DNA of 64,000 nt. It comes from Eutreptiella sp. 'Long Island Sound 2002' (Eukaryota > Protista > Euglenida). Of the stretch, positions 10,101 to 25,100 are shown piece by piece; positions within the stretch are counted from its first letter, which is position 1; each line of letters starts with the position of its first letter. The notes under the pieces are model-generated. The model worked only from the letters and a program-made list of their open reading frames with translations. It was not told where the DNA came from and did no database searches. The stretch covers positions 30,070,001 through 30,134,000 of the forward strand of contig OZ038378.1 of NCBI GenBank assembly GCA_964036045.1, read 5' to 3'. Position numbers and translations under genes: made by a program.

Positions 10101-13100
10101 AGGCGGTGTAGTGTTCACAAGAGGGTGGTGGTGGGGGGGGGGGGGTTCTGTCGGCCCTGAGACCCACCCACCCCAAAAAAAGTTCTTGACCCTTTTTTTT
10201 GGCTCAGGGGGAGTTAGGCGGCCTTTCGCAGGACCCACCCAGACTCCCCCCCACCACCTCAGAAAACAACTCCTTAAAAACACAGCCTGACGGCAGATTG
10301 ACAGGCAAGCAAGTGCGCCGGCAGGCAGGCAGGCAGGCGGGTGGGGAGGCAGGCAGAAAATCACACAGGGACAATCCGTTCCGGTTGACAGTGTCCATGG
10401 GACCCCCTCCCGCCCCCGCCCCCACCGCCCACGAACTCCCTCTCTGATGCTTCCTTTGTGGGCAGGCAGGCAAGGCAGGCAAACAGAGCAGCACGTAGGC
10501 AGGCAGGCGTAGACCCGCCGCCCAGCAGGGAGGGAAGGGGGGGGGAGGGAGGGAGGGAGGGAGGGAGGGAGGGAGGGAGGGAGGGGGAGGGAGGGAGGGA
10601 GGGGGGGAGGGAGGGAGGGAGGGAGGGGGGGGGAGGGAGGGAGGGAGGGAGGGGGGGAGGGAGGGAGGGGGGGAGGGAGGGAGGGAGGGAGGGAGGGAGG
10701 GAGGGAGGGGGGGGGAGGGAGGGAGGGAGGGAGGGAGGGCTTTGGCTTTGGCTTTGGCTTTGCTTCTCCGCTGGGTCGGTGCGGGTGAACCGTCCCGCCC
10801 CTTAACACGCTTTGTTACCCCTGCATCACCGTGCTATTCCTTTACCTACGCTTGTTTGGTCCTTGTGTTTTCCTGCTCTTTCGTCTTTTTTTCTACGTCG
10901 GCGTTCTGCCTATTCTTTGTTTGTTTGTTTGTTTGTTTGTTTTTTCTTCCTTATCGTGTGCTTGCTTCCTGTTTGTTTGGTGGCTGTTTCCGTTGTTGCT
11001 TCTGCCTGTTCCTGCTTCTCCTTGTTGACTCTCCTTGTCACTCGTTTGTTTCCTCTGCACCGAAAAGCGCCACAAGACGAATGCGCACCTTAGATCATAA
11101 ATGCATGCATTTGGGGTGCGGGTAAGGACGGAGAATCCTCCCTCCCTCCCTCCCCCCCTCCCCCCCTCCCTCCCTCCCTCCCTCCCTCCCCCCCCCTCCC
11201 TCCCTCCCTCCCTCCCTCCCTCCCGTTCTCCGTCCTTACCCGCACCCCAAATGCATGCATTTGTGATCTAAGATGCGCACTCGTTGTTACTTCTGTGCAA
11301 CCGTGTCTCAGCGATGGGCCGGTGAACAGAGTCAACGACGAGTGCCGTTCCGCACAACCGCACAGCCGCACCTTCGACGTTGCGTGTGGCGCTGAGTGCG
11401 GTAGACAGCGGACCATGATGACGACAAGAACAGGAGCGTGGGCGCAGCGAGACCATCGACAAGGGCAGCGGCGACGGGCATCTGAGGATCAACACGTGCC
11501 GTGCTCGTGCCGCCCACAGTCGCTGTCTTAGTCGCCGTGAGGCATTGCTGGCACCGCACGCGGGACAATGCAGCTGGAGTCTCCGCAGCGGTACATGCTG
11601 GCGATCGGAGGCGGTGCGCTTGTGCGACGATGGCTGCCAAGTCGTGGATGGGGCTTGCAGAGAGCAGCAGGAGTGTGCCTCTGGATGTAGCCCCAGGAGA
11701 ATGCCACCCGCGGTCGCTGCCTTGGCCCCCTGTCCGCGAGAGGAGGCCTGCCCGCCGCAACTAACCAAGGCCAGCGAGCACGCTAAGGCGGGGAGGGCGG
11801 CGACAGCCCAGACCTCTCCGGTGCCTTACTGGACACGCCCGGCGCGGACGGCGGTGGGGACGGCGGCGGTACCAGCCCCGGCGACTCCCCTCCTGGAGTG
11901 GCCCCGGTGTCCGGACCCCCGACTTGGCTGGAGGGTGTCTATACGCCCACAGCCCACGAGGGCGCCCCAGGGCGAGGCGATGGCACTGGGTCCCCCCCGG
12001 GGGCGGGGGCCTGCCCGGGCAGTGGCACGGGGCCCCACGCTATCGTGGGGGGTTGGCGGTACAGCAGGGGGCGCAGCCGCCGCGGCACTGCGGCTCCTCC
12101 TGGCGCCGGGCGTGACCAGGACGGTGGCATCGCTGCAAGGCATTGCTGGCACCGCACGCAGAACAATGCAGCTTGGGTCTCTGCTGATGTACATGATGGA
12201 GGTCAGCTGCGGTGCGTTGGTGCGACGGTGGCTACCAAGTCGTTGAAGGAGCCTGAGGCGTGCGGCAGCGATGTGCCTCTGGATGTAGCCCCGAGGGGCT
12301 GCCACCCACTGTCGCTGTCTTCGTTGATGCAGTGCATTGCTAGCGCCGCGCACAAGACAATGCAGCTTGGGTCTCTGCTGCTGTACATAATGGCGGCCAG
12401 CTGCGGTGCGTTAGTGCGACGGTGGCTGCCATGTCGTTGAAGGAGTGGACTGGTGTGCAGCGGACGTCCCCGGCCGTGGCCGGGAGGGGCAACGCCCTGT
12501 GGTGATACACCACCATGAACAGCGGTATGCCCTGCGCCAGTGCAGGAGGGGGCAGAGCCTCTGAAGCTGGAGTTAAAAAAGGCTGGGTGTGCTCAGGATG
12601 CCACGGACAGGAAGCCCGGCTCAGGGCGCAAGCAGGATGGCGCTGCACCAACCGCTACTGTGGACCGGCGTACGCGGATGTAAGCCAGATAGGCTGTGAG
12701 CATCCCCGGCTTTAGCCGGGAGGGGCAAGGCCCTGTAGCGATATACCCCCGCAGCTTGACGCATGCCCTGCACCGGTGCAGGAGGAGGCAGGGCCTCTGG
12801 AGCTGGGGTACAGTGCGGAGTGCGAACTGGCACGAACGCTGAGTCAAGTACAGCGTCAAGTTACGGGCCCTGCAGAGGTGCAGGAGGGGGCGAGGCCCCT
12901 GGTATCCGGGATACAGAGGATAGTATGGCCCTGCGCGAGGACAGGAGGGGTACCACAGTACCCTTGGTGATCTGTGCGTGGACACCCTGTTGGTTGAGGT
13001 GCTAGTGGCGAGTTCGCTGCGGCGCCTCCCACGGGGTCTGCGCATGGAAACAACCAAGAGTCCAGAAATCCCTGTCCAGGAACTAACTCGATTAACAGTG

Positions 13101-22100: not shown

Positions 22101-25100
22101 CTGGCTTTGCACCTATTGACGGACACGCTGGTCCCAGAGTTGCTTCGTGCTAACCTGCAGGCGTCTGACGAGCTCTGCGCGGTGCGGTCGTATGGTGCAG
22201 CTCTTGCCATGTTGCCGGGCCCTGACCAGCGACGGATTCTGAGGGAGGCCGGCTGTGATGAGGACGCAGACCTGACCACGATGGAGGGCATTCCCTTGAT
22301 CAAGAAGCTGGAGGTCGCGTTCAAAGTGGTGGCGGGTACGATGCGTCCGTCTGAAAAATATGCAGGATACGATGTACACAAGCAGTTCCAGGCGTCAGAG
22401 TGGAACCAGCCGTTGTGGCGCGCCCAGATTGTGCGTGCAATGACGGAATGTGGGTTTGAGGTCGCTGATCGCCCAGCAGCAGCACAGCCGCCAAAGTCCA
22501 AACCGTTGACGGAGGATGAGAACATTGACAAACAAAAAGCCCAGTCCCGCAAGGTCATGCTGAAGTTCGCCCCGCAGGACACGTCCGAGATGGGAGTATG
22601 GTACAGGGTAGTGCTGGACCACTGGGACTACATCCGTGCCACCAACACCAAGGTCAAAGTCATGGACATCATGCAAGGAGAGTTGGACGATGTGCCCAAT
22701 GCCATGCAGCAAGTTCTTGATGACCAGATCACCGCCGACGGGATGGGCATCATCGATGATTGCGTCACAAATATCATTCGGGAGATCGTCCGGTTGCGCA
22801 ACGAGAGGGAGCGCTTGGGCGTGCAAGAGAGGGCGAGAGATGCTGAAGTGGAACGTGAGCGCAAGCGCGAGGCCGACCGACAGCGCCGTGAGGATCAGCG
22901 CAAGCGAGGCGATGACCAGAAAGCCAAAGACCGGGCGGCAGCGGTCAGGGTTGACGCAGACGGCGACAACACAGCGGGGGGGGGGCAGAAGGATGCACAG
23001 CACCAGAAGGAGCTGCGCAAGCTCCATAAGCAGCTCAGAGCCCTGAAGCATGGTGAGGATTGGTCGGGGTCGGAAGATGAAAAGAAAGGCCCAGACTACC
23101 AGGATGTCACGACCGCCTCGCAGAGCATTGAAGTGATCACCTTGACATGCCTCAGAGGGGCAGATCCAGCCACAGTTGCCAAGTTCGTCAATGCCGAGTT
23201 CACCTTCAACAACCTCGCGAACATGTACTCCTTGCTGGCTGGGGCGTGCGATGGCAAGGCCCAAGACCGACTGAACCTCTGTGTGGATGCCGCCTCAGTG
23301 CAGCGCATGTTTCCAGACGGACAGGAGGAAGGCCGCTTGAAGATCCGAGGAGCAGCAGTATCAGTGGTCGTGTCGAGGTCCAGGCATATGCAGGCTCTGG
23401 CGCAGGCGATTCGCGGTCAGCCCGAGCACCCGACGGCCAAGGGCAAGGGCGTTGTGATCTCTGCAGGCCAAAAGTTCTATGAGCAGAGGGCTCAGCAGAG
23501 GGCGTCGTCAGGGCGGTCGTGGCAGCAGAGGACCTCCTTCGTTTCTGGAGGTAAGGGTGATCGTCAGCATTGGAGATAGCAGCCCGCCTGTGGCTGAATA
23601 GTGTCGGGGATGGCTTCACTCTCTGGTCGATATACAGTGCATGCGCACTGGCTGTTGCCGCCTAAATGGTGCATCTGCAAGGTCCACCTGATGTTGTGGG
23701 TTGTCATTTCTGGTCTTCCTTCAGGTATAATATATGGCCGTAGACTACATGCAGGTGGCTGGCGTGAGGCACATGCTGGTATGGCGCCATCATGCAGCAA
23801 TCCTGGCACGTTAGTGCACGGCGACAGGCACGCACAGGCCAATCATTGATGTTACCTCCCTGCCAGGCAGGCCAGTTTTCAGTATGAGTCGTCCTTTGTT
23901 TTTCTGGCAATAGCCGTTTGTGGGGGCTGGCTCGGGCAGATGTGTTCTTCAATATATTCTGCTAAGTGCCCCTAAGGGTGGCTACACTTGAGGATCGTGC
24001 TACAGCGGTGGGCCGTTTGCCCTGCAGCAACTTCCGTTTTTTCTGCCCATATAACGCCAGCGCCTGGTCCTGATTTTTGTCAGCGGTTCCCATCCAAAGT
24101 GCGGACTGCAATGCGCAGGTAGCATGCCTGCCAGACCATGGGAGTGGCGCACAAAGACAACAATGAGGTTGATGGGCAGTTGACCATTGGATGTGTCGCA
24201 TTTCACAGGGGGCAGTATTTCATGCCGAGGGGAGGGCAAAGGTGCGTCTTGGGATATGGGAGCTCATCACGGTCGGGCGGTCCACAAGACTAGGTTACTC
24301 AGGGCAGGGCATGGTCTCAGGAATCAATGAACCCAACATATGCCGTATGCATGGTGTGGCAGCAGTGAGCATACATCTGCTGCGGTTTCTATCGTGGTAG
24401 GAGGAGAGCAGGGCCGTAAAAGCAGAACACACCTCCAACCAAAATGAAGCAGAGTCCCAGAACCCAGTCTCACAGGGCAGAGCGATGTCGCAGGATACCA
24501 AAAAAAAAACGAAAAAACCCGCAACGTCCAAGGTAAGAGGGGAGAATGAGTCCATTTGCCATCGGCAGCACGGTATTGCCCTCCACCATTTGGTGGGGCA
24601 ACGGACCAGAGAGCAACAAAAACACAAATATCACGAAAAGACGTAGGACTAAAGATTCAAGTAGGCAAGAGCAAAGAAGCATAGCGCAAGAGCCGGGAGA
24701 CACGGGAGCAGGGCCGAGCCAAGCCGGGATAGGTGCCTGGTTCAGGTTCTGGCTCTGGGTGCAGCACAACAAATAGGCATGCAGGTGCACACAAGGGTAA
24801 GGGGGCAGAGGGGGCGTCTCCCCGGAAAAGGCGACACCCAGACCCAGACCCAGACCCAGGGAGGGAGGGAGGGAGGGAGGGAGGGAGGGAGGGAGGGAGG
24901 GAGGGAGGGAGGGAGGGAGGGAGGGAGGGGGGGGGGAGGGAGGGAGGGAGGGGGGGAGGGAGGGAGGGAGGGAGGGAGGGAGGGAGGGAGGGAGGGGGGG
25001 GGGGGAGCAGCAGACGCGCACCTTGCGTTGAACTCTTCGGCTTGCATTAGCGGAACGGGTGCCGCGGCCGCTTCTGCTTTGACTACGCGCTTGCGCGCGG

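Follow-up and report, generated by a model that had tools for sequence, protein, structure and literature searches.

A cluster of related retroelements interspersed with (GGGA)n and (CCCT)n tracts in the genome of the euglenid Eutreptiella sp. 'Long Island Sound 2002' raises the question of whether such elements choose this simple repeat as their landing site, in which orientation they do so, and what kinds of element share it. The cluster occupies positions 10527-25004 of a stretch of 64,000 nucleotides (nt) of contig OZ038378.1 (positions 30,070,001 to 30,134,000), hereafter called the window, which has a GC content of about 60%. An earlier note, made from the letters of the window alone, had described a three-member family composed of an autonomous long interspersed nuclear element (LINE), a copy reduced to its first open reading frame (ORF1) and a 400-bp short interspersed nuclear element (SINE), inserted into the repeat in either orientation. 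We consider it very probable that the window instead records a LINE, family A, that targets G-rich repeats in a fixed orientation, and that it holds a disabled full-length copy of it (copy 1), a copy of its deleted derivative (A-del, copy 2) and a chimera of A-del with a related LINE, family B.

The cluster itself is plainly there, and the order of tracts and elements given previously was reproduced when tandem repeats were located with Tandem Repeats Finder (TRF) and element limits by direct reading and self-BLAST. From left to right, a (GGGA)55 tract in plus-strand sense (10527-10739) adjoins a short minus-strand element (10738-11136), a (CCCT)22 tract (11137-11224) separates the 5' end of this element from that of copy 1, and copy 1 (11226-21564, plus strand, 10.3 kb) is followed by 17 nt of C-rich sequence and an assembly gap (21565-21781 together). 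The A-del copy (21782-24857, plus strand) then leads into a (GGGA)37 tract (24858-25004) that constitutes its canonical downstream target flank. The remaining 49.3 kb of the window are free of GGGA/TCCC tracts of 20 nt or more, so the association of the cluster with the repeat is not due to chance.

Family A and the repeat into which it inserts

Genome-wide matching was done in the 2.28-Gb assembly that holds the window and recovered at least 40 copies of family A at either end with 92-100% identity (the best 40 scored matches per query were considered). We gathered 33 5' ends and 44 3' ends and found a G-rich repeat in the element's sense upstream of 32 of the former and downstream of 42 of the latter, or at 74 of 77 ends in all. 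One of the remaining 3' ends directly adjoins a truncated copy, and the only two C-rich ends both belong to copy 1 of the window, which is the single 3' end of the 44 with C-rich sequence after it. The earlier note had proposed that flanks be tabulated in this way, and the result supports targeting; its idea of targeting in either orientation does not fit the count, given that the sole exception is copy 1 beside the assembly gap. Most flanks are (GGGA)n, some are a 22-mer minisatellite of the GGGGAGGA type, (GGGCA)n or (GGAGGGCA)n, and these rare types match on both sides of the element (the 22-mer minisatellite at C4:1.93 Mb and GGAGGGCA at C1:154.8 Mb). Beyond the tract, 29 outer flanks fall into 23 clusters, made up of 22 mutually unrelated sequences and one set of 7 in which the flank is the 3' end of another A copy, as in tandem arrays. 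Even 5'-truncated A copies of 54-165 nt lie within GGGA.

Point variants within the tracts reveal what happens to the target. The variants GGGGGCGAGGG, GGCAGGACCGG and GGGAGGGTGGG are each present at both junctions, and the duplications that they mark are 11 bp long (12 when the last A of the tail is counted) at C25:5.72 Mb, C4:1.93 Mb and C4:19.1 Mb, while C1:154.8 Mb is consistent with 11-12 bp and C5:55.9 Mb has 8 bp. Every target-site duplication begins at A|GG, so the first nick would fall at about 5'-CC^T on the C-rich strand. Because variant-bearing flanks show these duplications, the repeat is the target and not a synthesised tail, and the flanks taken together show that the element enters repeats already present and does so in one orientation only. 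The preference for targeting over tail synthesis expressed before therefore stands on the duplications and the concordant rare flanks, whereas the argument from tract orientation that had been offered for it is lost.

The same habit is visible in a diverged relative of family A at a locus from another, metagenome-type assembly (L031). This relative, at 46% amino acid identity, is bordered at either end by GGGA arrays oriented as those of A, both arrays carry one shared idiosyncratic variant unit, its 5' end is similar and contains ATGCATGCAT, and its tail ends in CCA. On the same foreign contig (L032, 1-2228), the end of another LINE with a canonical Pfam RNase_H match lies upstream of an (AGGG)n tract and may represent a further GGGA-associated family.

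What kind of element is this? Copy 1 carries a single reading frame (13284-20390, plus strand) that is split by a TGA codon at 19206-19208, with both parts in the same frame. A pattern search found TGG at this codon in 31 of 32 genomic copies, so the family encodes one protein of about 2368 amino acids (about 2368 codons in the family) and copy 1 is nonsense-mutated, which disposes of its description as autonomous. Three coding modules of A are kept in the L031 relative at 32-46% amino acid identity. The N-terminal, ORF1-like module (13284-14819, plus strand) contains a charged coiled-coil stretch and is the part retained by A-del. Over 512 codons compared between copies 1 and 2, its ratio of nonsynonymous to synonymous substitution rates (dN/dS) is 0.17, a sign of purifying selection on the module, and it is 32% identical to ORF1 of the L031 relative. 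This N-terminal part of about 520 amino acids belongs to no known family according to Pfam, and all its Atlas matches fell below 0.85.

The enzymatic domains were assigned along separate routes, given that Pfam searches with the entire ORF and with six pieces of it returned nothing but a sub-threshold RVT_1 match and that PDB sequence searches with the single protein and a 4-row profile gave no matches. An APE-type (EEP) endonuclease domain at 15939-16526 (plus strand) is assigned transitively: profile positions 16-172 match stretches that score above the Pfam threshold for Exo_endo_phos in the relatives P0024, P0101, P0106, P0116, P0125 and P0143, and distant full-length relatives show Exo_endo_phos at the N-terminal part of the profile and RVT_1 at its middle. 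The top PDB profile matches of this domain are EEP enzymes that align with it at the E and GDxN motifs, at non-significant scores, and an Atlas lead is concordant with the assignment. A non-LTR (long terminal repeat) reverse transcriptase (RT) domain with VDD replacing YxDD lies at 17397-18143 (plus strand). Its RVT_1 score of 27.7-28.3 bits is just below the Pfam cut-off of 29.6, and a 25-row RT profile of the family searched against the PDB placed R2 (E 1e-39) and L1 ORF2p (E 1e-34) far above the group II intron RT (4e-6) and retroviral RTs.

C-terminal to the RT, as in the LINE clades that bear one (I, ingi, Tad1, LOA and similar), an RNase H domain (18723-19190, plus strand) was recognised from an AlphaFold2 (AF2) model of the C-terminal 190 amino acids with a predicted local distance difference test score (pLDDT) of 91.6, for which every top Foldseek match in the PDB is an RNase HI/H1 or a retroviral RNase H with probability 1.00. 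The C-terminal domain further contains a CCHC motif (C-x2-C-x9-H-x4-C; 19491-19547, plus strand) that is kept in the L031 relative and in family B. Searching a profile against 1.84 billion representative proteins retrieved only 190 relatives of A, mostly fragments, and word searches brought up no relative with a clade name. Target-site duplications, 5' truncation and a simple-repeat (CCCAGA)n tail are hallmarks of non-LTR elements, and terminal repeats were absent from the element in self-BLAST. Family A is thus a young and very divergent APE-type non-LTR retrotransposon with RT and RNase H, and the earlier notion of a (GGGA)n-targeting LINE with these three activities is upheld by flanks and domain evidence alike.

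Outside the coding frame, copy 1 shows several features of its untranslated regions (UTRs). The 5' UTR holds tandem monomers of about 195 bp (11508-12445), which also occur in the relative with 46% identity (L031 4325-4785; L032 6067-6750) and recall the monomeric promoters of mouse L1. A palindromic ATGCATGCAT core about 25 nt from the 5' end (window 11249-11262; L031 3236-3248 and about 13975-13990) is shared by three diverged families and may serve as a signal for the start site or for processing. The 3' UTR (20391-21564) ends with the tail CA(CCCAGA)3CCC at 21542-21564. It includes a 35-nt A-rich run (21300-21334), and the approximately 220 nt after this run are 82% alike in the deleted subfamily while the stretch before it is only 76% alike, so that the terminal 3' UTR module may have a separate history. 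Among the neighbours of the cluster, the ten ORFs flanking it gave zero Pfam matches, so that the single intron in which the earlier note placed the cluster is no more than putative.

Orientation of copy 1 and the origin of the repeat

Copy 1 is the locus at which the orientation rule breaks. Its 5' end faces that of the minus-strand element across the (CCCT)22 tract, and the two ends match in inverted orientation over 59 nt with 95% complementarity. Read from the minus-strand element the tract is canonical (GGGA in its sense), whereas it is non-canonical for copy 1. A first explanation, which we regard as rather unlikely, takes copy 1 for a true reverse-orientation insertion of a family that accepts the repeat in both directions. 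It can point to C-rich sequence on both sides of copy 1 inside one contig, and the 5' arm of copy 1 is only 87-95% identical to the facing inverted arm; the arms belong to distinct subfamilies, which makes a simple fold-back artefact unlikely. A possible route to a reversed copy would be a nick in the G-rich strand, as the enzyme of family B would make it, followed by pairing of the CCC of the tail with the GGG 3' end. However, this would be a lone case among 33 5' ends and 44 3' ends, only 17 nt of downstream flank are read ahead of the gap, and the site has no variant-marked target-site duplication.

Similarly limited credence goes to a second explanation, that the head-to-head ends and CCCT flanks of copy 1 result from misassembly or from a post-insertion rearrangement across the microsatellites. 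The contig is interrupted 17 nt into the tract, the neighbouring A-del element lacks about 1.6 kb, and no other locus breaks the rule, yet one contig contains both element ends together with the (CCCT)22 tract, and a tract of 88 nt is easily spanned by long reads. As to rearrangement, an inversion through the tracts was ruled out as the source of the CCCT flanks because the canonical relation would persist and non-canonical flanks could not arise in this way. Twin-priming was also considered and set aside, as it accounts for the head-to-head ends but not for the 3' flank of copy 1. A rare reversed insertion and a misassembly or rearrangement therefore appear about equally good as accounts of copy 1, which, whatever its origin, is no demonstration that the family targets both orientations.

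The gap at 21582-21781 bears on this question. To its left, the contig stops 17 nt past the tail of copy 1; to its right, the first bases already belong to the 5' UTR of the deleted element and correspond to position 13163 (self-BLAST). Because other A-del copies begin about 3.25 kb ahead of the deletion junction, some 1.6 kb of the 5' part of this copy is unread and the real gap exceeds 200 nt. Judging from these coordinates, the two sides are not continuous, and an ORF spanning the gap (21141-21884) was accordingly discarded as an artefact. A second gap of 200 N was seen at another locus (L064, 309-508), at a distance of a few hundred bases from a (CCCT)n tract accompanied by a copy of family B, and assembly gaps seem to cluster near these repeats.

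A much weaker alternative concerns the repeat as a whole. The (TAA)n of the I factor is a tail made by the element, and (GGGA)n could likewise be a tail that family A makes or carries, with new copies landing in old tails. It is true that the repeat follows 3' ends throughout and that 7-8 of about 30 5' ends come directly after the tail and (GGGA)n of another A copy. Against this stand 22 loci with an upstream G-rich tract that have unrelated sequence beyond it and no upstream A copy, 11-12 bp duplications that bear locus-specific variants, flanks of other types than GGGA that are identical on either side of a copy, and the fact that the element's own tail is (CCCAGA)n. This alternative is largely refuted, and we think it very improbable.

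The deleted derivative and the 400-bp chimera

If family A chooses G-rich repeats in one orientation, what are the two other elements of the cluster? Copy 2 has lost its 5' part in the gap and ends in a (CCCAGA)n tail. By self-BLAST, it has no equivalent of 14820-20381, with the deletion junction at 23449/23450, and it retains an ORF of 554 amino acids (21915-23579). This junction is common to at least 30 dispersed copies on many contigs with 92-100% identity. Since so many copies share one junction, A-del is a real amplified family, non-autonomous and about 4.7 kb long, that keeps the ORF1-like gene and has lost the RT. The ORF1-only derivative suggested before thereby gains a stronger standing than had been proposed for it. 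A and A-del copies with identical flanks also recur in pairs, direct or inverted (G000 C27:1.28-1.66 Mb, C23:23.62-23.67 Mb and C11:51.8-53.3 Mb), and this recurrence indicates large segmental duplications that carry them.

The 400-bp element was a different matter. Most of it (10738-11075, minus strand, about 340 nt) is a 5'-truncated copy of the 3' UTR end of family B with the tail (GCCAAA)4 at 10738-10762, and the remainder (11055-11136, minus strand) is an A-del-type 5' end of 82 nt that is 97% identical to other such ends. Junction alignment showed that head and fragment meet in a partly homologous stretch of about 20 nt (11055-11075). For the 337-nt body, at least 40 matches with 95-99% identity were found in the genome, and the 39 matches other than the window copy all run upstream into family B and none into an A-type head, so that the A/B junction occurs once genome-wide, spanned by the window copy alone. 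These alignments show the 400-bp element to be a one-off A-del/B chimera, a product of template switching or recombination. Because its 3' end is that of family B, it has a GCCAAA tail and CCCT as downstream flank, and the (GGGA)55 tract at the edge of the cluster is the C-rich downstream target flank of this minus-strand fragment. The two hexamer tails, (CCCAGA)n and (GCCAAA)n, were correctly described in the earlier note, and it is the SINE tier, and with it the three-member family, that has to be given up. It is extremely improbable that the element represents a genuine third tier, SINE-like and mobilised by family A, despite its A-type 5' end, the GGGA tract upstream of it and its simple-repeat tail, as its A/B junction is unique in the genome, as body, tail and C-rich downstream flank are those of family B, and as no small-RNA head (tRNA, 7SL or 5S) was found by Rfam, which gave zero matches anywhere in the window, or by a tRNA search of the window.

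Family B thereby enters as a second occupant of the repeat. Its 3' ends carry (GCCAAA)4 followed by a C-rich repeat in its own sense, namely (CCCT)n, (CCCCTG)n or (CCCCCCATCG)n, and 5'-truncated B copies have an identical C-rich repeat on either side. About 1.1 kb upstream of the 340-nt piece, family B encodes a homologue of the CCHC domain of A (27-34% identity). The homologue and the C-rich flanks together identify B as a related LINE on the opposite strand. At one locus (L076), A and B lie tail to tail within one tract, and at L031 a B-like scrap is found inverted next to the A-like element.

A model of integration and its known counterparts

We propose that family A uses target-primed reverse transcription to insert itself into (GGGA)n and comparable G-rich repeats that already exist, with the G-rich strand always as its sense strand. 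A first nick in the C-rich strand at about 5'-CC^T would be followed by a second cut 11-12 bp away that gives rise to the target-site duplication. The repeat would be read by the APE endonuclease, perhaps aided by the CCHC domain, and repeat-specific cleavage by this enzyme is suggested by the constant A|GG start of the target-site duplications. Read-through (GGGA)n at the 3' end of the RNA may pair with a (TCCC)n primer, and read-through pairing of this kind has been described for R1/SART-type elements. A-del would be mobilised in trans by A, whose enzymes it would borrow, and family B inserts the other way round into repeats of this kind. One tract would in this way have come to hold a nonsense-disabled full-length copy, an A-del copy and a single chimeric fragment in which template switching or recombination joined an A-del 5' end to a family B 3' end.

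Several points weigh against this reading and temper our confidence in it. From the model one would not expect CCCT at both ends of copy 1. The specificity of the endonuclease and the read-through priming are inferred; the APE assignment is transitive via the Pfam matches of relatives, and the AF2 model that includes this domain (the 1109-amino-acid APE-RT-RNase H part, 4 rows) had a pLDDT of 32 and went unused. Moreover, copy counts are lower bounds, some of the loci counted are segmental duplicates, and family B was read from partial sequence.

The closest counterparts of the A/B pair are TRAS1 and SART1 of Bombyx mori, telomeric-repeat-specific LINEs of the R1 clade. Like A and B, these are APE-type LINEs with a fixed position and orientation in a short tandem repeat, the two families occupy opposite strands of one repeat, and their copies stack in arrays. 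They differ in their target, which is the telomere instead of interstitial (GGGA)n and other G-rich repeats, and family A is unlike them in its architecture, with the ORF1-like part, RNase H and CCHC domain all within one giant frame; Pfam detects no relationship between the sequences. Kojima and Fujiwara reportedly described LINEs in microsatellites, comprising Waldo in (ACAY)n, Mino in (AC)n, Kibi in (TC)n, Koshi in (TTC)n and Dong in (TAA)n. Family A resembles these in the repeat on both sides of copies, the fixed orientation and the youth of the families, whereas its host is a protist or alga and theirs are animals, and most of them have no RNase H, with Dong using a restriction-like endonuclease. 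According to PMC4640811, microsatellites serve as sites for target-specific non-LTR elements, and (GGGA)n as the target of a LINE was not found in the literature searched.

Pairs of an autonomous element and a derivative with an internal deletion or only ORF1 are also familiar from ingi/RIME of Trypanosoma brucei and L1/HAL1 of mammals. Like RIME and HAL1, A-del has kept both termini and the ORF1-like gene and has been amplified. In ingi, as in A, one frame contains APE, RT and RNase H, a likeness of architecture, but ingi has no strict repeat target. What is new here is not the habit itself, which is known, but the (GGGA)n target, the rare and divergent lineage, the giant single frame and the opposite-strand A/B pair.

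Repeat-specific LINEs are natural examples of programmable integration at safe sites and show how endonuclease specificity evolves, and family A adds to them a G-rich, structure-prone target in (GGGA)n. The A/B pair on opposite strands allows the determinants of strand choice to be mapped by direct comparison. For annotation, it matters that GGGA tracts are made longer and dispersed by these elements, which also give rise to assembly gaps in a genome of about 2.28 Gb. More tentatively, and with somewhat more doubt than conviction, we suggest that A and B form a pair of sister lineages in a LINE clade that branches deeply, has no name and radiated in this genome by switching its simple-repeat target, with the strands of one purine/pyrimidine repeat split between them. 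If this is true, one tract would be a shared, self-extending landing pad for A and B, and cross-talk between two machineries would have left its traces in the reversed copy 1 and in the A/B chimera.

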